DNA of 63,451 nucleotides, the filler included, from Sluysia triapertura (lineage: Eukaryota), in NCBI GenBank assembly GCA_046118255.1. It is 5 parts of 5 records of this genome, joined end to end, with 100 filler letters (N's around TTAATTAATTAA, not from the genome) between each part and the next. Parts side by side here need not be neighbours in the genome. Positions count along the whole stretch, not along the records: positions 10,957 to 25,401 come from JBJNIA010258959.1; 4 more parts are not named here. The stretch is one strand, 5' to 3'. A model generated the notes under the pieces. It had not been told where the DNA came from. It did not search any database and saw only the letters and a program-made list of their open reading frames with translations. Positions 10,957 to 25,401 of this stretch are shown here, piece after piece; positions within the stretch are counted from its first letter, which is position 1; every line of letters begins with the position of its first letter. The translations under genes and the position numbers were made by a program.

Positions 10957-11421
10957 TATATATATGGTATTTAAAACCATATGATTCGATTACACTTGAA
11001 ACATCATTGATATGTATTATAGACAATAATAATATATATTATAAAAGATAATAATAATAAGACTATTATCGTCAAATATACTCAAAATCCAAATTTCTAA
11101 GTATAACGTTTTCCCGATATATTGAGGAGTAAATATAGGAAAAATTATATTTCATCAAAAGTTAAAGACCGAAAATCAGTGTTAGCTACAATAAATTTTT
11201 ATTTATTTGAATTTTATTTTCCTCTTGCAATCTTTTAAGCCGTGTAATTTGTGTTGTCGCATTTTTTAATTAATAAAGCTTCAAACTTTTAGTTTCGTTT
11301 ATTGTATTAAAATTTGTAGTTATACTTATTAAGACCTTCAAGTATCAATTTGATTGAAGATCATAATATTAGTTATTAATGTAACCGTTAACTTATTTAG
11401 TTGCAGAAAAGCCAACGATAC

Positions 11422-11780
11422 GTGAAGATAAAAACATCTAGAGCCTCCTGAATGCTTTATTAACTGATAAATAATTTTAAAACTTTAATAAAACATAAAA
11501 TGAGATAAAGTCTAAAAATAGATTAATTAATTAAAATCACGTTTTTGTGAATAATTTTGAATGCGGAATGCTATGTTGAGTTTGGGACGGTGTGTATTTG
11601 TTTTGGAGACCTTTTTTTGTTTGACCGAGTTCATGCAAGGAAAGCCCTAATATTGAGCAAAGTTAAATTTTAATTAATATTTAATTATGGAATGTTTATT
11701 TTTAATACTTATAGTGATGCAAATGTGATGAATGGAATATGTAATGATCTCTAAGTGAGTTTGAAATGTTTGTAGAAAAA
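11422..11780. repeat. Interspersed repeat copy A (direct repeat with ~19120-19539)
   Basis: Shared blocks tagag.ctcctgaatgc, ataattttgaatgcggaatgctatgttga, tttgaccgagt, caaggaaagcc.taata and aagttaaattttaattaat. Confidence 0.85.
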
Positions 11781-14423
11781 AATATACAACAGAGTGATAG
11801 CAAAATATGGCTCTTTATGTAATATTTAGATAAGTCCTAGGAAGTCTGGAATTCGACTTAATTATTGTGCTTATTCCTCAGACAGTTTTATGTTCATCTG
11901 TACGAGAATATTCGAACTCTAGTGATAAAGATAATTTATTTTTAATTTGTCGAACGACTACTCGAGATTTATTAACATTTACCAATGTTACATAAAACAT
12001 CGTAAGAACGATAATAAAGCTTCATTTACTGCGGAAAAATAAAAAAACAATTACTTGATTAAAAGCAATATCGTTTGACAATCATCACTATATCTAGAAT
12101 AAACTGGTTTTCAATATTGACTAAAATTGAAATTATACATTTATTTGGCCCAAAATGACTGACAATACAAATGACTTATAAATCTCTTCCAGGAATAGTT
12201 GAAGAAAAGCCTTCATCTTTTAGCGAATCTTTTCTTGTATTAACTAAACTAAAATTAATGTCTTATCTTCATTGCTTAATTGCATAAGTATGTGTTACTA
12301 GGCTCCTAAATTTCATTACTTAAGATACATTAGGATAACTTTTATAGTTTCTTAACATTGATATCTAACCTACATTTCTACCAAGTGACAATGAAAGATT
12401 ATTTGAATTGCATAAAGATAAATCATTCAGATCATACAATTGTGCAATTTAATCATGTATAAATTCATGTGACATATGAATCATTACCATATAAACCGAG
12501 ATAGATAATCACGTTTTCTTGGCTTTGGAATAATTAATCAATAATTAATGAACAATATATTACCAATTACTAAACAATTTCTAATATTACTCGAATTATT
12601 TTGATCTTTAATGCCTTCACATCTAACTGTTTAAAACATTTCCAACATTCTAACACAGATTAATTTAATTGATTCTTCAGAAATATTTTTTATTTTTTGC
12701 AGTAAGAACTTGTAATGGTTTTATGAATCTAAAGACATCAAAACATTAAAACTCTTATCAAACCGATGTTTGTTTAAATCATATACAATAATTTTTTATA
12801 TGTTCTTGGAGTACATAGCGTTTTTGTTCTTGCAACTGTTCATTTACATCTTTAGCAGTTTTATTCTGTAAATTCTTAATTTCACTATAGGACTTAAAAC
12901 ATCTTTTCAGTTTCTTACTTTTGTAGCTCATTTTGGAAATCCTTTTAATACATCTAGTTCTAGCCTCCAAGTATACATTTTATGCATGCTTCTATTTTAT
13001 ATTAATTTTTATTTTTAGATATACACAATTTTAATAGCCAATCAATTTAGCCAATTACATTCACATAAACATAGGTGAAAGGATGTAATGTGATTGGCTT
13101 GGCAAACATTAATTTGGTTAATTTACTTAGAGGCCTGGAGGTCATTTTGTTTTTTGATCGAAGTGAATTATTAATTATTATTAAAATAAAAATGAAACAA
13201 ACTTGATGTTTTTGTTCTTTTAAACTTCTCTGTTATGTTTCATTATTCTTGGAAATGTATTCACGATCTTGCACGAAATTAAGAATTTAAATTAATTAAA
13301 GTTTGAAACTTAAAACTATTTAAATTTTTTACATTCAATTTGCTTTCCTTTATTCTTTTGATTGTCGTATAATTCTTTTCCTCATTGCATCTTCTTTTGT
13401 GATATACGTGATGTTTTATATTTATATGATTATTCCATAAGAATGTTGATCAAAAACAATGCTTTATACTTTTAGAAGTGACTTCCAAAATTTGGTTTTC
13501 AAATTGGATAGCCTGTTCCTCATTTTTTGGATGTTCATTTATTTCTTGTAAATTAAAAGGTATTTCAGTAAGATGTCTACGCTGTTTTAGATTTAACTGA
13601 TGATTTAAAGGAGGAATGGTTTTGTGTTGCGCAAGATCCCTATTAGAATATTCATGGTATAAATTGGTTTTTTAGTGTATAGGTTTTGCTGTTTTCTTTG
13701 AAGTTCTTGCCAAATGTATAAAGTAATTCCTTTGTATTTTTGTTCAGAATTAGATTAAGTAATCACAGAAACAAACGATCTGATTAATTAACACACCTTA
13801 TTGCGAAATTTTTGAAAAAAAAGCATACAGAAACGTCTCCACTAAGACATAAACCGTTCGCTGCAGACGAATCCCGCTTTATTAGTTTTTATATAAAACA
13901 GCCTACGCAATTCTAATACTTCGTGGGATACATAAAAATTTAGTCCTATCACAAAAATCTAGATTTGTTTCATTGAATTAACTACGAATGTAAAAGAATA
14001 AAATAGCAAAGTTTAATGTAAGAAAAATGACATTATACAAGGTTTTTAATATCAATTTAGAATTTATTTTAGGAAATGAAAAATAGAGCTTAAAACTTTA
14101 TCAACAATTAACTAAATTATCTAACACAAAGTTAAAAGGATGTATTATTTTAAAGATTCATGAAAACTACTACCAAAAATTAAAAATTTAACAATTAATG
14201 TTTGTAGTTTAATGCTTTTAGTTTAATAAGACACTATCAAATACAAAACATTAAAACCAAGACCAATTATACTAATTTAAAACCTTATTATACAAAGATC
14301 CTTAGAATGTAAATTAAAATATTTTATTATGACAATCAAACAGTTTAAGTAACATAATCATATTTATCTAAAACAAACTATAATAGGTTTTAAGTTTTAT
14401 TTACAGTATTTAAATGGAAATAT

Positions 14424-17400
14424 TCATATAGTGTAGTGTAACATATAACGTGTATACTTTCTGTTTCGATAAGTTTCTGTAGTTGTGTTGGAATATTGGT
14501 GTATGTTATGACCATAATGATAATAACCCATAGGAGTAACTCCGCTGAATTGTTGATTTGCTCTGACATAATTTGGCATTAAATTACGGTGCATCATGTA
14601 TAGCATAGGCATTACTGGTGGAAGCGGAGGCGGTGGTATTTCATCTTCTACTCTAGGATACGCGCTAATAGCTGAATCTGGATTGCTTATAAATACAGCA
14701 TTATGTACCCGCCACATAGCACTTCGTACGGCTCGAGCTGGATGGAATAAACCTTGAATCACAAGTTGCATTATCAAGCCTGATCCAAGAGCTACACTGA
14801 GAGTATCAACGCATCTCATAAATTGTTGACTTAAATGAGGACTGGTCTCTAAAACATTTGGCCACAGTTGATTTAACATATGCACCAATGCATCTTCTTT
14901 ACCATATCCATAACAATTAAGAGCTAAATGTGAAACAGCTGCAATAGCTGTCTGACGGTGGACTATATCTCTTTCGGTAACCGCATCGGATATAAGAGGA
15001 GCTATTGCATCTATATAATTTACAATATTTTCACCTACATATTCAACTAAGAATCCTAAAGATTTTAAAACTCCGTGTTGTACAAATAAATCTGGAACTC
15101 TATATTCATTCATCACTAATGGTAACACTGTAGTTGGATCACAAGTATCTGCAACCACCGCTATGGCAACAGTACTACAAATTCGATTTTGTCGTTCTTG
15201 CGTTTTTAAATTGGTTAATAAGGCAGACACAACATCAACTGGGCCTACCGTTTGTGCTATATAACCAAAACTGTTTATAGCTGCTCTTCTAATTGACTTT
15301 TTTGGAGATTTAAAAATTTCAATCATGTCAAAGCACACACGCATCCACTCTCGACTATTAACCTGATCACCCGCATTAGCAGCAATAAACCCTACAAGAT
15401 CTAAACAACTTTCTTGTACACGTTCTTGTCTATTCTTTAATATAGGAGTTAATCGTGGTAATAATTCGTTAATAGGAGGCCGATTATCATGCAAGCCTTT
15501 CTCCCTAACTACCAACTCAATAGCTTTAATTATTGAACCAAGCGCTTCTGGAAATTCTTCACCGAGATACTCATAAAGCATATTTGACATTAACTCTAAC
15601 GTAGCTGATTTTCCACACATATTGGCTACTTTCGCAAGACGACCTAAAACATCAGCAGCTTGTTTTCGAGTTCTTTGACTGCGATTACGCATACGAAATA
15701 TAGCTTCAGTAACAAAATCATCAATGTATGGTTCACATCGTTTAGCAAGAGTATTTAAAATATTACCAAAGCAATTAATAGCAACATTATTTTGATCAGT
15801 AGCTTGCTCTTCAAATACACAACGCAAAGAATCTATAAGTGATTTAACCATTCCATCATCCAATTCGAGCGTTCCATTTATTGCAAGTACTTTATCACAT
15901 GTTTCAATAGCCATTCTTTTAAATGTTTCAGTGTCACTACGAATATGATCAATAGCTCGAGTAATAATTTCACGTACACCTACAATATTAGTCATAGCTA
16001 CAACAGTTTCAACAACACTATTATAAACTACACGAACTACAGCACTGCGACTGTTCCAGAAACTTTTAAAGAAAGGTCTGATTACATCAGACAACATATA
16101 ATCGCGAGATAATGCATCAGAATTACACAACTTTTGCATTGTATTCAAGAGGACTAACTTGAAGCTTTCATCTGGTGTTGCGAAATTTCTAACGACGATA
16201 GGAATAATCAATCCACTGAAATATTTTCGATAATTTTTTTCCATTAAAGGTATTAAGAAACTCGTAGCTTTAATAACAGCAGCTAAATGTTTACCTCTTG
16301 ATGAATTACATTCTTTCCACAGAGGTTTAAGAACTTCATCGAATGATTCAATACCATAAGGCGAAACAGCTTCAGCTAATGAACTAATGGCTAACACTGT
16401 TATAGTTTTCACATTTTGGTTTTCATCACTCAATCCTCCAGTAACTAAACTAACTAAATTATTTAAATATGGCAAAATCGAACACTTCATTGCTACTGCA
16501 ATCTCACGAACAATTCTCATTCCCGTATGACGTACTTTCCATCCTTTACGTGAAGTACAAACTGCTTTAATAAATGGCAGTAACGGAGCTAAGCCAAGAG
16601 AATGAGCAACTACAGCAAAACAACAAGCAGTTACTTTTCTTACACCGTCATCTTCATTGTCAATATCAGGTCTCAGAGCACTAATCATAGTTGGTAAACC
16701 AACAACTTTCGATAAATTTGATACAACTTCTCTTCCTTCTTGACGCGCAATATGATCCTCATCTACCAAAAGTGGTAAGACAGTTGTCAAAATTTTATAA
16801 GTATACGGTCGCACTTTATCTTCTAATTTGTACATTAAACGATCAAGTAATTTAACTAATAAATGTCTTTGTTGATCATCGATATTAGCTTCTAACAATA
16901 ATGGAATTATATTGTCAAACAATAAATTGACTCCAAATTCTGATGCACGTCTTGTTAACTCTCGAAGAGCAATACGACGATTTCTAGGATCTGCATTCTT
17001 AACTTTAAGAATTAATGTTAAAACTTCTCTTTCTTTTGGTTTTAATTGATGAGCATTGTCTTCACGTAATCTTTCAACAATAGCTGCATCTTCTTTTCCA
17101 ACAGGAATATTTTCAATTTCATCTACTGCACCTAATCCCATTCTGTTAGCAGTATCCATGGACTCAGATTTTTGATATGGAATGGAATATTGGCCCATCT
17201 GAATAGGAGTTAAGCCTCCACCACCAAATTTTGATCCTAAACACGGGGTTGGTGTCGCAATTACAGAAGATTTTTTTGTTTTGCTCACATAACCTTTTGG
17301 TGGTCGCAATTTTCTATAACCCGGAGGTATAATTGAATCTATATCTGAATCTGTTAATGGTTGAGAATGAGGATCATAACTTTTATCTACCATTACAAAT

Positions 17401-18083
17401 CTTGTGGGAACTTCTTTACCGCGCATAGGCGTTTTCATTAAAATAGCATCTTGACCCATTGGAGTTGACTCGCCGTATGACAATGAAGGCGTAGCTGCCA
17501 CAGAATGTTCCGATTTCGATATTATTGGCGTAGCGAATCCACTTGTTGCTGGAGTGTTATTACGAGCACTTTCATCCCATCGAGACCGACGTTTAGAACT
17601 GGGAGTTTTTTCCCGTGGCGTATCGAATTCTCTTACACTTTTTGGTGTTTCGTAATCTACAATACTTGGAGTTACACTTCGTTCACGACATGGAGTTTCT
17701 TCAAATTTCATCTTTTTCTTAGGTACTGGAGTTGCATCACCATCTAGCCCACTCATTGGAGTCTCAGACCAATTTTCCGCATTCTTCGATATATAACGAC
17801 TTGGTGTTTCTTCACAATAAGCTTTTGGTGTTGGTGAAACAAAATCTCTATCTGCTTTGCGGTTCAGATTTTTATCCCACCGGTTTCTTCGATTGTCAGA
17901 ATGCTGTGATTCTTTAGGCTGCTTAACTGAATTTGAATTTTCAACAGTATTACTTAACATCACCTTCACATATGGATTGTCATCAGTATCTTCAGTAAAT
18001 ACGTCTGGACCAACTGGAGAATACATCAAATTATGCATTTTTCGCTTCTTTAAGAAGCTATGTTGATCTTCATTTTCATTCAT
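14424..18083 (-). CDS. SF3B1: Splicing factor 3B subunit 1 (SF3B1/SAP155/Hsh155), single-exon CDS, highly divergent, 1219 aa
   Basis: N-terminal RWD ULM-like motifs and TP repeats. HEAT-region signatures: RPDIDN, PYGIESFD.VLKPLWK, LYEYLGEEFPE.LGSI, LLPRLTPILKNR, REWMR.CF, LK.QERQNR.C, MNEYRVP, HRQTA, WPNV.ETSPH, QGLFHPAR, and a terminal Y.RY.L.Y. A TAG acceptor at 18088-18090 just upstream of the ATG suggests a 5'UTR intron (candidate donor GTAAGT at ~18290-18295). Confidence 0.97.
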   Translation of the reverse strand: MNENEDQHSFLKKRKMHNLMYSPVGPDVFTEDTDDNPYVKVMLSNTVENSNSVKQPKESQHSDNRRNRWDKNLNRKADRDFVSPTPKAYCEETPSRYISKNAENWSETPMSGLDGDATPVPKKKMKFEETPCRERSVTPSIVDYETPKSVREFDTPREKTPSSKRRSRWDESARNNTPATSGFATPIISKSEHSVAATPSLSYGESTPMGQDAILMKTPMRGKEVPTRFVMVDKSYDPHSQPLTDSDIDSIIPPGYRKLRPPKGYVSKTKKSSVIATPTPCLGSKFGGGGLTPIQMGQYSIPYQKSESMDTANRMGLGAVDEIENIPVGKEDAAIVERLREDNAHQLKPKEREVLTLILKVKNADPRNRRIALRELTRRASEFGVNLLFDNIIPLLLEANIDDQQRHLLVKLLDRLMYKLEDKVRPYTYKILTTVLPLLVDEDHIARQEGREVVSNLSKVVGLPTMISALRPDIDNEDDGVRKVTACCFAVVAHSLGLAPLLPFIKAVCTSRKGWKVRHTGMRIVREIAVAMKCSILPYLNNLVSLVTGGLSDENQNVKTITVLAISSLAEAVSPYGIESFDEVLKPLWKECNSSRGKHLAAVIKATSFLIPLMEKNYRKYFSGLIIPIVVRNFATPDESFKLVLLNTMQKLCNSDALSRDYMLSDVIRPFFKSFWNSRSAVVRVVYNSVVETVVAMTNIVGVREIITRAIDHIRSDTETFKRMAIETCDKVLAINGTLELDDGMVKSLIDSLRCVFEEQATDQNNVAINCFGNILNTLAKRCEPYIDDFVTEAIFRMRNRSQRTRKQAADVLGRLAKVANMCGKSATLELMSNMLYEYLGEEFPEALGSIIKAIELVVREKGLHDNRPPINELLPRLTPILKNRQERVQESCLDLVGFIAANAGDQVNSREWMRVCFDMIEIFKSPKKSIRRAAINSFGYIAQTVGPVDVVSALLTNLKTQERQNRICSTVAIAVVADTCDPTTVLPLVMNEYRVPDLFVQHGVLKSLGFLVEYVGENIVNYIDAIAPLISDAVTERDIVHRQTAIAAVSHLALNCYGYGKEDALVHMLNQLWPNVLETSPHLSQQFMRCVDTLSVALGSGLIMQLVIQGLFHPARAVRSAMWRVHNAVFISNPDSAISAYPRVEDEIPPPPLPPVMPMLYMMHRNLMPNYVRANQQFSGVTPMGYYHYGHNIHQYSNTTTETYRNRKYTRYMLHYTI

Positions 18084-19119
18084 TTTCCTAGAATAAAAAC
18101 ATAATATATAAAATATGATAGGTTTAACAAAACTTATTTTTGTCCCAGTATAAATGTAACTGAATATATATTCATTTTGGAAATATGAATATTGTCATGA
18201 TATACCCATATTCATAAAATAATTTTAAAATTAAACTCATACTTATATGTACTGCATTGATAAGATCAATTTCGAACATAAAAAAATAAACTTACGCAAT
18301 GCAAATAACCAATATTCAAATAAATTTAAAAAAGTGCATTTTAAAACAAATGTAAAAGTAAAGATATAATAAAAAATTTTAAACCAATATAAAAATTTAA
18401 TACATTAAACCGCCGAATATATTAAAAACACAATTTTGTTAGAAAATGAAGAATTTGTGTGAATCAAATGTTATTGAAACCATTATAAATAAATGTCAGA
18501 CGTTAAAAAGTAATATTAAGAAAATGAAAAATAATTTATAATACTAGTGCTATTTGTAAATTATTAGATGATTCAATGAAGTTATTTACTGCTTTCGTGA
18601 TTACGTTTTGGAAAAGAGAACAATTCAAAATCAGAAGGCGTTAATGAATTAAAAATTATTTCTTCTAATTAGGAATTAGAAATTCCAGTTAAAGAAGTTC
18701 CTAAAATTGATGATAACAAAAATGAAAGAATAAAAAATTAAATTTAATGGAAAAACAAATAATCTTAATGATGTCTTCACAATGTTTTGTGAGATTTAAA
18801 TCCAGCAATCCAGCAATGACCTAAAATTCTAAAGAGAAAATAATAATAAATTACATAACATACTAATGAGCTAAAACAAATAGTTATAGATAATAATAAA
18901 CCTGCTGTTGATTGTCAAAAAATAAAATAATTAATTAATCGTAAATGAGTAATCGTAAATAATTAATCGTAAATAAAATACCAAATGACGAAGAATATAT
19001 ATGAGCATTTCAGATCCTTTATTAATCTTATAAAGTGTTTAAAATCTTTAAAATAGTTAAGAAATAAAATCTAGTATAGTAATAATTAACATGAAGAAGT
19101 AGAAAAGGGAATCAGAAAG

Positions 19120-19539
19120 GTGAAGGTGAAAATATTAGAGTCTCCTGAATGCCTTATAAACTTACTAAATAATTTTAGAACCTCAATAAAAACTTTTAGC
19201 ATAAAATAAGATTAAGTCTAATAATAGATTAATTAAAATTAAAATCTTAATTAACTTAAGAAAAAATACGTTTTTGTAAATAATTTTGAATGCGGAATGC
19301 TATGTTGAATTTGAAACTATGTATGAATTTGTTTATAAAAGACCTTTTAACGAAGTTATGGTTTGACCGAGTACAATCAAGGAAAGCCTTAATACCGTGA
19401 GAAGTTAAATTTTAATTAATTCTTGATTATGCAATGTTGAGTTTTTTATACTTAGAATGATATAAATATAATGAATTAAATATGAGATGATTGCTGTGAA
19501 AGAGGAGAATCTATGAGTGAGTTCAAAATGTTTGAAAAA
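19120..19539. repeat. Interspersed repeat copy B (direct repeat with ~11422-11780)
   Basis: Same blocks as copy A, same orientation, several indels. Confidence 0.85.
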
Positions 19540-20798
19540 TGGTTCGTTGGAGAATAAGAACCGTAAAAAATTTTTCATTAGAAAATTGTGTGTGAAAAAC
19601 CAAAGATCAATTAAATTCTGAAAACTAAAATTAAATTCCTTATTTTTATGTATGTTAACAATAATGATTGTTATTTTAATGTGAGAATTAATTTAAGTAA
19701 ATGTAGATTGAATAAAGTAAGGGAAAATAATAGATAATCGTAAATAAAATTTTTGTGTTCTGTATCTAATAAAGTTTGACAGTCTGTATCATGTAAGTGT
19801 CCAAGTATTAACTGTCGGATTAATTCTGAAAGAATGCTGCAGTGATATGTGTGAGAAAATTGGAAATTATTGGATGAGAAAATATAAAAAGGAAAACTTA
19901 AAAATTTTATTACACTACACAACAACAACTACAACGACAATACAACAATAATAACAATTAGGAATGCAAATGAGAAGATCCATGCATTAAGTAATTTTTG
20001 AATTTATTTTATAATTAAAAATATTATTTTTTGGAGGATTTTATTAAAATAGTTTTTTGTTCTTGTGTTGTATTGAAAAATTTATATTTGATAATCGTGA
20101 ATCATAGTTAATATTTTTCTTAGTGTTACTTCACTTCTGGTTTCTTTTGATAGATTGTTATATCCTTGAGACTGTTATAAATGTTATTGTTAATCTGGTC
20201 ATATTAATCATTTTTAGTACTGCTTAATAGAAATTTATAATAATATTAATTTGTAATTGATTTTTATTTAACCAGTAAATTTTTTAACATTGTTGTTCTT
20301 ATTTTTGCTCATAATAAATTTTGATTCTCAGATGATTTTTCTTTATAATTAAAGACAATACAAGTTTAATATTGATTCGCTTATATAATTATTCATTTAG
20401 AAATAAAATAGAATAAGCATTGTAAACTAAACGATATAATAAACTAAGATATAGTATTTAAAAATAAAATAAAATAATCGTTATAAAATAAACACTATAA
20501 CAACAAAGTAAGGAATAAACTTTTCAAGAATAAACAGTTAACGTATACTTGTTAGACGCAATTTAAATTTAGGAAAAGCATTGTTAATTGCATCAAGTAG
20601 TTAAGGACCCTTTACGTAGCCCTATTGACATTTGACATCTTCTGAGTACGTTTTCTTTAAGGTATAAAGTGTACATCACAAGCGGACCCAGAGAAATTTA
20701 TAATTGTTGCAGTATTAGTATAAAATCTGAAAAATCTTTGCCAGACCGTAAAAAGGTTGACTTAAATTATAACTTTACAAGAATATAGCTTTAATTTT

Positions 20799-21017
20799 AT
20801 ATAGTGGTCGTAAACATTTTTAGGAAAATGATAGCTTAAAATCACTGCATTAGCATACACCTTGTAGTCAAACGATAGTCTCTTTCTTTTTCGAAAAATC
20901 TAATTATTAATATAGTGGTCGTAAACATTTTAAGGAAAATGATAGCTTAAAATCACTGCATTAGCATACACCTTGTAGACAAACAATAGTCTCTTTCTTT
21001 TTCGAAAAATCTAATTA
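20799..21017. repeat. Tandem duplication, 111-bp period, 2 copies
   Basis: atatagtggtcgtaaacattt...tcgaaaaatctaatta starts at 20799 and at 20910, with about 3 mismatches. Confidence 0.95.
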
Positions 21018-22629
21018 GAATGTCTTCGTTCAGATATAAAACGTGTCTAATTAGTCGGACTAACTTCCAGAGCTTATTCATTTTGCTAGTTAGGTTTCTT
21101 TTAAGTAAAACCACAGCAGAATTAATTAATTTTTTTGCATCAAGTATTGAATTTTTTAGTATTTCTTTTAAAAATTTTAAATTAATTTAATAAATTTATT
21201 TTTTCAAATGTATTTTCGTGTAACGTGTTTTCGATCATTCTTCCACACCTAATAATTTAATAATTTGTCTAACACTTGTTTAAAAAATAACTTTTCACTT
21301 AACACGTAATATTAAGATATTACTAATAATTATTGAATTTAAATGTCTATCAATTTTTTAAATGGTATAATCAATATAAAATATGTTAAATCGAATCTAT
21401 CTTCTGTTATATTTAAATATTATTGATTATTAAGAATTTGGTTTTTCAATTTTCAACTAACCTTTGCTTTTGCATAAATTATGCATTTATAAAAATGTAT
21501 TTGGGTTTGTGTTCTTAGATCCATTAGCTTGAAATTTAAATTGTTCTAAAATAAAATATTTTACGATCAAAACGTACAAAGGTTATTTTTCTCCATTTAA
21601 AGATCCAGAAGCTCAGATAGAAAATATATTCCTATTTTTTATTTGAAGACAGTCACTTGCAAAGTTGAGTCTATAAACTAAAAAAGTCAGATAACAATAA
21701 TGAACATATTTAATAATGTCAAAAATACAAAATTCTTAATTTTAATTTCATTGTTTTTATACATATTAATTAGTTATAAAACTTAATTATTAAAAATTAA
21801 TATTTTGTTCTGTAATTTTCAAAGATTGAATTATTTATATAAATTGTAAAATAAATGCTTCTTGGCATATTTTCATTGTTTTAAACTAAGTATCACATTT
21901 TTTTATTTAAATTTAACAGAAAAAACATACTATTGATAATAAAAAATCAATTACCAATATAAAATTTATATTTATTATTATTTGAGGTTGAAAATTTTTA
22001 ATAATGTTACAATTTTATTATACATAATTTTAAATTTTTTTGTACTTTATTAAAAAAATTATCAGACTTTGTTGGGCGATCAGGATGCCAATTTAATTTT
22101 AATTTTGAGCTTTTAAAAAGTCTAGTTCCTTCAACCACAAATAACAATTATGAAACTAAAGAAACATAAAAATAACCTACATAAAATGTAAGTTGATCAT
22201 ACATATTTTGCATTACTAATAATTCACTACGATATCAAACATCATTCACCAAGTGATTGGTTTATAAACGGTTTTAAATTCTTCATTAATTTATTAATAT
22301 TACTAAATCAGTTTGCCATTAACATTTTTGAGTCCTCAGTATGTCCTACTGTCATTGCAAATAGATGTTTCACACTTTATTTAAATTTAACTATAAATTT
22401 AACACATTAAAAAATTGATTGGAATTTTGAGTATATTGAATATGCGATTTACTTTCCAATAAAATATAATTTAAATGTAGTAAAACATTTCTATTTTTCA
22501 AAATATGATAAGAATAAAATTTAACTATTTTATATAGCTACAGAACAAACAATGAAATTTAACTATATCCAACCGATTTTTAACAATGCAAGTTTACACT
22601 TTATTCAAATTTTTGTTTTCATCAATTCT

Positions 22630-23111
22630 TTATCAATGTTTCATTGGAAATAGAAATTATTTTCGTATTTTTAATCGTTTTATCGCGACTTGTTTTCGAG
22701 CATATCCTGATGTCGCTCACTGAGGAGGTTACATTTTATTGGACGATAGTATTTCAGTTCACTTTCTTTGATAATTTTAAATACTGATATTTTCGATATA
22801 TTGAGATGTCAAGCGATTTCTCGGTGACTGAAATGACGTCAGTTCATTGCACCGTGTCGCACAGATGAAACAGAAAAATCTTTCACTGTGGCAGTGCTTC
22901 GTCCGAAATTTTTTTCTTTGGCGTGTACTGGCTATTACAAGACCTTCTAGTTTCAAAGTTGCAACATTATTAAACTGATGCATTGTAATCGTTGAGAAAA
23001 TAGTTGGTAACACGGCTAGACATTTTGTCAATCCCAAGTCGGATTTTCGTTTTTGAAAAGAATAATCACTTGCCTTTGAAAGTCTGAAAGCTGTTTCTTG
23101 TTTCCTTCCAT
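22630..23111 (-). mobile_element. Decayed Tc1/mariner-superfamily transposase (N-terminal HTH region, maT/rosa-like)
   Basis: MEGNKKQLSDFQRQVIILFKNENPTWD* ... FSHREIA*HLNISKISVFKIIKESELKYYRPIKCNLLSERHQ ... KIISISNET (IIFSDE-like); stops and frameshifts. Confidence 0.75.
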
Positions 23112-25119
23112 GATGTGGGTATCAAAAAGAACCTAAGATAAATCAAAATAGAAATGAGTAAGCACGCATTTTATTCATGACCCTCAAAATTTCCGCTTTT
23201 CTAGCGACGATCCTGTATTATTTTTCTCCAGCCAGTACTTCTTGTCATCATTGTTTGGGATGCAGTTTTCCATGATATAATTATATATAAATTATGTTTT
23301 TGGAGCCAATTCTGGTTTGATCTACAGAATAAGTGGTATAATTTTCAAAAAAATTCTTTATATTCTTGATGACTTCTATTCAATATATTTTACCTTACCT
23401 TGACTTTCGTTTGTAAATTTAATTATTACATCTTGAAATTAATTACTATGCATTGAATGGTTTATATCATGAGTTGAGGTACTTTTTTAATCATTTAATT
23501 TAATAAAGTATCTAAATTAACATTAGTGAATTTTAAAATGAAACTATTTGTATCACCTGCCATAATTTCAATCTAACAATTAAATTGCTGACGATATTTT
23601 TCTAATTCTTTATATTGTAATTCTTAAATTACTTAAATCTAAACAGCTGTCCCACATAACTTGTCCTTCTTTTCCTAGTAAAAGCGCAATCAAACAAATT
23701 TTTAAATGAAACTTTAAATGAATTTTTAAAACTGGATAGGCCATATGATGTGGAAAAATACCTTTTGATTGTCACATTATTTGAAAATACTTTACTGGTT
23801 AATAATAATGCAGATATCGTGCTAGTTAAATTTACTAAAATACTTGGCAAATTGAAATCTATCCATAAATTTCACTGAAACATTTTTAATGATTTAGTAT
23901 AAGCAAGTGGGGCTTGAAACTTTTCTGAAATTCAAAATTTATTAATTCACCTATTGCATATTTTAATAAATGACGAATGTTATATCCATTCAAATTAACA
24001 AAACGCAAGTCCTATAGAAACATCGTAAACATTACGTAACACGTATACCAGGTGAATCCATAAGTTAAATTTAATTTTGTAAAATACCATTTTAAAGGTC
24101 ATATATTAAAGAATTACCTTAAATAAAAAGTAAATTTAGACCAATAATATAGCGTCTTAAATGTAGCATCTCAATACACATTTATTATCCTCCAATAAAC
24201 AAAATAGTCAAAACCATTAAATACAAATCATTTTCAATCTCAAAAATATTGTACATCTTTCCTTTCTACGCACATTTACTATCATGTTATACTATTGAAA
24301 TTCTTTTCAATTACTTATTTTTGAACATCTAATATTTTCTACGAAGTTAAGATAAAGCATGAAGAGATCACTTAATACAATTTTAAAATAAAATAATAAT
24401 TCAAAAACAGAACGAATTTTAGGCGTACTTTTAAAATAGCAAAAATAAGATAAATCTTTAAGATAAAGTAATATAAGATCCTTAACATACCAACATAGAA
24501 ATAACTACTTTCAGCTTAAAAACAGCTTAACTGCATTGTAATTCTGCCAAACTGAAAAACACCATTCCGAAAAATAAATTTATTACATTAATAAAATATT
24601 TTTTATTTTCAAAAGTTGAAATTTTCGTATTTTATAAGATAAATTAAAATATGATGCATAATCTATAATAAAATCTAAATAATAGGTAAATTTACATTTA
24701 AAAATATATTTAAACAATAATAACACTAATTTTTTCAAGTATTAATTTAAAGATTCTAATTGTAAATGATGTGCATTGTAAATTTTTTAAAAAACAAATA
24801 AGAAAAATATTTTGTAAAAAAATTAAAACCTAAAAACACTAAATAAATCGTGAATTTGCAAATATTAATGTGGTACTAATTTTATCGTACTTAATTTGAG
24901 GGATTGAATATTTTTAATTTTGATTTAAAAATCATTTATCAGTATTTATTATGATATTTGATTTAAAATTCGAAAAGTAAAATAATAATTTAAATGGGTA
25001 ATAGATCGAAATAACAAATTGCAGATTAATTATATAATGTGAACAAATGCAAATTGAGCTTACAGTATAAATATTAAATGAACCATCACACAAATTATAA
25101 ACTTTGCTGATTATGTTCT

Positions 25120-25391
25120 TTTAGAAGCATTGGATATGCTACAATGTCTTTGATTCTATGTCAGCTAGACGATTCGTTTCTTTTTAATCTTATAAAAACA
25201 GCTCTTCACATTTTTCTCAATTGAATTATTAACTCTTGATCGAAAAATTTCTGCACTTTCTCGATCAGCTAGTTGGTATTAGAATTAGATGTCACATTTT
25301 TTTGAATATGTCAAACCACCCACTTGAAGCGATAAAGTGTTTACGTTCAGTAAACTTTAAAGTTGGCCCATTTATTGGGAAACTTTCAGAT
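25120..25391 (-). mobile_element. Decayed Tigger/jerky-type (pogo) transposase fragment
   Basis: SESFPINGPTLK...FIASSGWFDIFKKM*H (CENP-B-type HTH, cf. PISGP...FKASNGWL.RFK), then LADRESAEIF and SNAS; cut by the spacer. Confidence 0.75.
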
Positions 25392-25401
25392 TATATATAT
25401 A

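Follow-up and report, generated by a model that had tools for sequence, protein, structure and literature searches.

A putative old SF3B1 duplicate beside the canonical gene in the genome of Sluysia triapertura

The divergent locus and a second SF3B1 gene

The stretch of DNA analysed here, referred to as the window, comprises 63,451 nucleotides (filler included) from the Sluysia triapertura assembly GCA_046118255.1. Its piece at positions 10957-25401 (record JBJNIA010258959.1) was AT-rich (21-38 % GC) and displayed a single long open reading frame (ORF), which encodes a divergent homologue of the splicing factor SF3B1 (Table 1). As originally predicted, this ORF was intact over its 1219 codons: it contained no in-frame stop, compared with a mean of 91 and a minimum of 72 in 200 composition shuffles, and the remaining five frames of the same stretch harbored 47-131 stops. 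When compared with the PDB by phmmer, residues 67-1147 of the window protein matched residues 230-1289 of human SF3B1 (5ife_C; E=0, 1024 bits), the HEAT domain being colinear with known SF3B1 along its entire length; yeast Hsh155 was matched at 5.6e-216. Human numbering was offset by +143 for window residues 362-764, which agreed with the constant offset of 143 announced for the hotspot region, and by +142 beyond residue 766. Pfam matches in the ORF comprised the p14-binding domain SF3b1 together with many families of HEAT type.

When the animal's own assembly (619 Mb in 263,945 contigs) was searched in six frames, a second SF3B1 gene was uncovered on contig C90935; an intron of ~805 bp divides it into an N-terminal exon and a HEAT exon of 783 codons. 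This copy, designated canonical here, shared ~80 % of its residues with SF3B1 proteins from arthropods, molluscs, vertebrates and flatworms; its nearest relative was the Logan protein P0002 (91 % identical). It kept 14 out of 14 hotspot residues as well as the motifs NGTPPIRK and EDYYARQE. The window copy was 52 % identical to it. Exons of canonical SF3B1, and likewise those of SF3B2 and SUGP1, were each used singly and unjoined. The original prediction had taken the window gene for the ordinary SF3B1 of the animal, with proofreading lost or rewired; the presence in the same assembly of a canonical SF3B1 with all hotspot residues contradicts this. Its fallback, a specialised SF3B1 paralogue, held as far as the paralogue is concerned, and the specialisation is weighed below.

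Both copies started where flatworm SF3B1 starts, that is without the ~110 N-terminal residues of other bilaterians. The window protein displayed two strict UHM ligand motifs (ULMs) and 17 threonine-proline (TP) motifs, the canonical copy three and 26, respectively. An insertion of ~57 residues, in which P, M, Y, H and N abound, separated the HEAT domain of the window protein from the conserved C-terminal motif; it was encountered neither in the canonical copy nor in any other SF3B1 protein compared.

Two further loci were pseudogenes of the canonical gene, together 63-88 % identical to it. The one at C230411:1351-1907 was a processed pseudogene, 76-88 % identical to the canonical protein, with several frameshifts and stops and without the parent intron, which indicates that SF3B1 mRNA is retrocopied in this genome. 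The other (C27314:1033-1262) was likewise a fragment with stops and frameshifts.

Table 1. Features of the divergent SF3B1 locus, with positions counted along the window
Feature	Residues	Position	Strand	Remarks
Divergent SF3B1 paralogue ORF, intronless, complete		14424..18083	(-)	1219 codons + stop
N-terminal regulatory region	1-344	17052..18083	(-)	17 TP motifs; start as in flatworm SF3B1
ULM-like motif RRNRWD	65-70	17874..17891	(-)	
ULM-like motif KRRSRWD	164-170	17574..17594	(-)	corresponds to the last ULM, upstream of the p14-binding region
Pfam SF3b1 PF08920 (p14/SF3B6-binding)	163-284	17232..17597	(-)	E=3.4e-17, 63.5 bits, cut-off 25.1
HEAT-repeat domain	345-1147	14643..17051	(-)	colinear with human ~488-1289
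HEAT 4-7 stretch	D479, G480, K483, R523, N557, H599	16287..16649	(-)	
Branch-point-adenosine/modulator pocket segment	929-936	15276..15299	(-)	K1071, R1074, R1075 kept; T1077A, V1078I
C-terminal tail	1148-1219	14427..14642	(-)	~57-residue insertion, then terminal Y-x-R-Y-x-L-x-Y-x-I motif

Hotspot positions and the SUGP1-DHX15 partners

Alignment with 5ife_C reproduced the six substitutions reported in the original prediction, namely E622D (window residue D479), Y623G (G480), N626K (K483), K666R (R523), K700N (N557) and G742H (H599), and the codon coordinates assigned to D479 (16647-16649), R523 (16515-16517), N557 (16413-16415) and H599 (16287-16289) were arithmetically correct. The residues said to be retained were so (R625 as R482, H662 as H519, G740 as G597, K741 as K598 and D781 as D638), and T663 was likewise kept. 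The changes of NGTPPMRK to NADPRNRR and of EDYYARVE to EDHIARQE were also present in the window protein.

The designation of these changes as a cluster did not stand, as they occurred at the same rate as changes at the other invariant positions of this protein. When 145 bilaterian SF3B1 proteins were aligned with the window protein and the HEAT exon of the canonical copy, 473 out of 768 core columns were invariant among the 145; the window protein differed at 176 of these (37 %) and the canonical copy at nine. All 14 hotspot columns examined were invariant in the 145 bilaterian proteins and the window protein differed at six, having replaced E622, Y623, N626, K666, K700 and G742. Against the background of 0.372, six changes among the 11 positions listed originally gave a binomial P of 0.19, and six among the wider list of 14 a P of 0.43. 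HEAT 4-7 (human 603-781) displayed changes at 35.6 % of its invariant columns, compared with 37.8 % elsewhere (Fisher P=0.67). The comparison of hotspots with background that had been proposed along with the prediction therefore revealed no enrichment. The most altered part of the window protein corresponded to human 760-960 (HEAT 8-12), where 53-69 % of invariant columns were changed, and the best kept parts to 1000-1240 and 560-760. Judged from these alignments, the hotspot changes belong to the general divergence of the window protein and do not represent remodelling aimed at this surface.

Among 65 cluster representatives of diverse eukaryotic SF3B1, aligned in a fast mode, K700 was replaced in 36 out of 62 and G742 in 55 out of 62, while E622D was encountered in 11. 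On this sampling, the six hotspot residues are not family-defining across eukaryotes. Such variability agrees with a published survey, in which natural hotspot-type substitutions were already described in eukaryotic SF3B1 homologues and E622D was the natural state in some fungi and Paramecium (PMC8785561). In human data, K700, H662, K741 and E622 were linked to docking of the SUGP1 C-terminus, and in the corresponding model the C-terminal tyrosines of SUGP1 dock in a pocket formed by K700, H662 and K741, with K700 contacting the C-terminal tyrosine (PMC10760632). By analogy, the SUGP1 C-terminus would be expected to dock less firmly on the window copy owing to K700N, Y623G and G742H.

The predicted loss of SUGP1-DHX15 proofreading was not supported either, as orthologues of both factors were present in the assembly. 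SUGP1-type exons were located on contig C127098, where the exon carrying the G-patch and its upstream flank matched human SUGP1 (8ejm_B) with E=1.3e-21, the next G-patch protein following at 3e-6. An exon of the DHX15 orthologue on C222166 matched human DHX15 at about 1e-138 and DHX8 at 5e-56. Pfam matches to SURP and G-patch were never found together on one contig of the assembly, the contigs being short, which is why SUGP1 was identified through its G-patch exon. Its C-terminal YY exon was not found, contig C127098 ending before it.

A few other sequences of this kind were encountered. Contig C125671 (positions 1-638, thus 638 bp) displayed a SUGP1-type G-patch very near vertebrate sequence at 43 % GC, compared with ~27 % for the genome; because its GC content is unlike the rest, this contig probably comes from a different organism. 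A SURP exon on C195724 was of ambiguous family assignment. The SUGP1 gene itself contained a 39-nt micro-intron with GT..AG ends, which restores the reading frame (L034:4255-4293, on C127098). Together with the ~805-nt intron of canonical SF3B1, it indicates that very short and long introns coexist in this genome.

Origin, maintenance and rival explanations

The window gene is probably an old, lineage-specific duplicate of SF3B1 in the AT-rich genome of a flatworm-like animal that kept its canonical SF3B1. An old paralogue is indicated by its position in the tree, by shared derived residues and by a matching codon bias. Maximum likelihood trees joined the window copy, the canonical copy and P0002 in one clade, with support in the Shimodaira-Hasegawa-like approximate likelihood ratio test (SH-aLRT) of 98 under LG+G4 and 84 under LG+C20+F+G4, and placed this group with cestodes and trematodes. 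The branch of the window copy measured 3.08 substitutions per site, that of the canonical copy 0.13. Of the 59 states that arose on the stem leading to the canonical copy and P0002, 22 were also present in the window protein, in contrast to only 38 of 332 states (11 %) private to non-flatworm lineages (Fisher P=4e-6); it shared two of the 24 states found only in the canonical copy and one of the eight found only in P0002. From these patterns it is concluded that the duplication would have taken place after the split from neodermatan flatworms and around or before the split between the canonical and P0002 lineages.

The window and canonical genes agreed in GC content at third codon positions (GC3; 0.207 and 0.202, respectively), and their flanks were equally AT-rich. 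P0002 (L016:265-2643, Logan SRR33002330) reached a GC3 of 0.90, which, set against the canonical gene (L015:3565-5913), amounts to an extreme gap in base composition between related lineages.

The window ORF ran uninterrupted across the site of the canonical ~805-bp intron, the one intron position that could be compared. As it spans the parent intron site, and as a processed pseudogene is present on C230411, the window copy likely originated by retroposition of the parent mRNA. Neither a poly(A) remnant nor a target-site duplication was visible within ~700 bp on each side of the locus; absence of such marks is expected for an old insertion in DNA of 25 % GC.

Several observations pointed to maintenance of the copy. 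Four-fold sites of the window and canonical genes were identical at chance level, which implies saturation of synonymous sites, and the non-synonymous distance (dN) was 0.43. The window protein nevertheless kept 63 % of the panel-invariant columns, and 74 % of the changes at these columns had BLOSUM62 scores of at least 0. Among the residues of the branch-point-adenosine pocket, taken from PMC5458519, the equivalents of K1071, R1074, R1075 and Y1157 were kept, while V1078I, T1077A and L1066F were conservative. When window residues 345-1150 were modelled in complex with PHF5A from the same genome, the prediction scored 0.65, compared with 0.00 for the best control; 51 of 78 solved complexes attained that mark, as did two of 108 mismatched pairs. 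Runs shared at least 91 % of contacts and the partner displayed a predicted local distance difference test score (pLDDT) of at least 80. The predicted interface included the branch-adenosine pocket, where window residues 929-933 and 1014-1017 faced PHF5A 35-38. This model supports a putative binding of PHF5A by the window copy, and the substitution patterns indicate that the copy is selectively maintained as a full-length protein of the SF3B1 type.

A parallel case was found in SF3B2, another subunit of SF3b. The DUF382 family matched two loci in the assembly: canonical, intron-bearing SF3B2 on C5289 (L036:1968-2975, minus strand) and an intronless paralogue with an ORF of 559 codons (C198396:11-1687, minus strand), which spans at least three canonical intron positions. 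The latter was 62 % identical to the canonical protein in DUF382 and matched human SF3B2 with E=1.9e-92. In the tree, the intronless copy grouped with MetaClust P0296 (SH-aLRT 98) and the canonical exon with P0298 (SH-aLRT 89), and the four sequences were jointly sister to neodermatan SF3B2. As each copy groups with a different outside protein, the tree suggests that the SF3B2 duplication is common to at least one other species. SF3A2 was single-copy, and SF3B5 was represented by one full match and a partial one at a contig edge.

According to the explanation favored here, retroposition of the parent mRNA would have given an intronless second SF3B1 beside the canonical gene. The duplicate would then have evolved more than twenty times faster than its parent, selection retaining the TP-rich N-terminus and its two ULMs, the p14-binding domain, the HEAT superhelix, most pocket residues and a surface compatible with PHF5A. 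Its role would most likely be that of an alternative SF3B1 subunit entering SF3b and the U2 small nuclear ribonucleoprotein (snRNP) for a certain class of introns or in a certain tissue or stage, possibly as a partner of the divergent intronless SF3B2.

A number of points weigh against this explanation. The window branch is very long (3-10 substitutions per site) and of deviating composition, so that long-branch attraction could affect its placement, and support for the clade went down to 84 under the mixture model. Retroposition is deduced from one intron position, with neither poly(A) nor target-site duplication visible. Searches of 5.8 billion proteins and of 1.84 billion representatives detected no orthologue of the window copy, but length filters and clustering at 50 % could hide one; the few representatives that scored higher with the window protein as query did so solely because the N-terminal region is part of this query. 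With its 263,945 contigs the assembly is strongly fragmented, and a mixed sample is conceivable. The PHF5A prediction may stem from the model's memory of solved SF3b complexes. Finally, no RNA run contained the window sequence, the sole public sequencing run in which it occurred being of DNA type and probably the source sample.

Two other readings accept a retained paralogue and differ as to its function. It is conceivable, if rather unlikely, that the lineage keeps a whole second SF3b module, composed of divergent SF3B1 and SF3B2 with shared PHF5A and other subunits, which would escape SUGP1-DHX15 proofreading and choose branch sites differently. In such a module, SF3B1 would lack the K700/Y623/G742 pocket in which the C-terminus of SUGP1 docks, and the variant U2 snRNP could serve one intron class, given that micro-introns of ~39 nt and introns of ~800 nt coexist; alternatively, it could act in spliced-leader trans-splicing or in a particular tissue, for example the germline. 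Slightly less probable is a paralogue acting outside the spliceosome, either as a neofunctionalised HEAT scaffold or as a decoy titrating SF3b partners or UHM proteins. The branch of 3.08 against 0.13, the replacement of 37 % of invariant positions, the heavy alteration of HEAT 8-12 and the C-terminal insertion would all suit such a protein; yet what matters for work in the spliceosome was kept best, namely the ULMs and the TP region, the p14 domain, HEAT 15-19 including most residues of the pocket, and the predicted interface with PHF5A. The copy could also be imagined as a decaying processed pseudogene whose frame is still open by chance, since it is intronless, very divergent and devoid of detected orthologues in a genome where processed SF3B1 pseudogenes exist. 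This is very improbable and, with the frame open, effectively refuted: no stop was found in 1219 codons where ~91 were expected, 52 % of residues and 63 % of invariant columns were kept despite saturated synonymous sites, and the true pseudogene on C230411 was full of frameshifts and stops at far lower divergence.

Two further readings concern the identity of the gene. An origin from a second, fast-evolving organism co-assembled with the animal (parasite, symbiont or prey), of which the window gene would be the normal SF3B1, is improbable, though less so than the pseudogene. The fragmentation of the assembly, the presence of at least one short foreign-looking contig (C125671, 43 % GC) and the equal distance (~52 %) of the window protein from all bilaterian SF3B1 would fit such an organism. 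However, the window gene matched the canonical one in GC3 and flanking composition, shared a significant excess of derived states with the canonical lineage and was joined with it in the tree; moreover, PHF5A, PRPF6 and PRPF31 were each found at one locus and not as two divergent copies, which speaks against a second organism in the assembly. The reading as the animal's ordinary SF3B1, with a SUGP1-binding surface rewired after loss or co-evolution of SUGP1-DHX15 proofreading, could draw on the six altered hotspot positions, K700 included, all of them otherwise invariant, and on the human data tying K700, H662, K741 and E622 to SUGP1 docking (PMC10760632). It is nonetheless as improbable as the pseudogene and largely refuted: canonical SF3B1 with all hotspot residues was present along with SUGP1 and DHX15 orthologues, hotspots were not enriched (P=0.19 and 0.43), HEAT 4-7 was no more changed than the rest (P=0.67), and the positions vary across eukaryotes (K700 replaced in 36 of 62), natural substitutions being already described (PMC8785561).

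The assembly also harbored unusual copies of other spliceosomal genes. The SF3A3 Pfam domain was encountered at no less than 31 loci (for example C52112:13359-13505, C22290:2556-2702 and C194335:1458-1601). These were mutually similar N-terminal SF3A3 fragments of ~200 residues fused to unrelated low-complexity ORF sequence; they were rejected as true paralogues and regarded as a repeat or gene family that captured part of SF3A3. Besides the full SF3A1 gene on C169280, extra copies of its SURP2 exon were located at C83887:779-934 and C254627:921-1076, both joined to a common unrelated upstream sequence, and look like chimeric or mobilised SF3A1 fragments. Similar SURP exons were found at two loci (C198387:6800-6943 and C17525:5746-5886); they resemble SURP1 of the SFSWAP type, and the pair may represent another duplicated splicing factor. 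The PRP8 PROCN family PF08083 had no match anywhere in the assembly, which is uninformative as PRP8 must exist. Either the assembly is incomplete or the search filter missed PRP8, and absences in this genome are not to be trusted.

Significance and comparison with known systems

To our knowledge, SF3B1 is a core scaffold present as a single copy in most eukaryotes and is among the most conserved proteins of the spliceosome. A literature search for SF3B1 paralogues returned no described case. A long-lived SF3B1 paralogue would be rare. Together with its SF3B2 counterpart it might make up a variant SF3b complex, a possibility made plausible by the parallel duplication of SF3B2. As a natural experiment, the window copy could reveal which functions of SF3B1 withstand the absence of the SUGP1-docking pocket, and whether one animal can run two kinds of U2 snRNP. 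It also has a corrective value, as what resembled cancer alleles in a wild-type gene would be a fast-evolving extra copy and not a rewired core pathway.

With canonical SF3B1/Hsh155, represented by human 5ife_C, the window copy has in common the TP-rich N-terminus, ULMs, PF08920, a HEAT domain of ~800 residues, the pocket residues and the predicted PHF5A interface. It differs in that its HEAT domain is only ~51 % identical, whereas bilaterian orthologues are mutually ~80 % identical, in the replacement of 176 out of 473 invariant columns, in having two strict ULMs and a 57-residue C-terminal insertion, and in the presence of a canonical copy alongside.

A further comparison is offered by splicing-factor paralogues derived from retrogenes, such as mouse Zrsr1, which derives from Zrsr2. 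The window gene is likewise an intronless copy of an intron-bearing gene with an open frame. Its divergence is far greater, however, and a second SF3b subunit (SF3B2) displayed the same pattern.

Cancer mutants of SF3B1 that lose SUGP1 (K700E, E622D, K666N/R, R625C and others) have six positions in common with the window protein. E622D and K666R are identical changes, and at the position of K700 the charge is lost. In contrast to these mutants, the changes of the window copy are germline, lie in a separate paralogue, and are found among ~370 other substitutions without hotspot enrichment. Cancer-type residues are natural both here and in the homologues described from divergent eukaryotes (PMC8785561). 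The latter, however, are the sole orthologues of distant lineages, while those of the window reside in an extra copy inside Bilateria.

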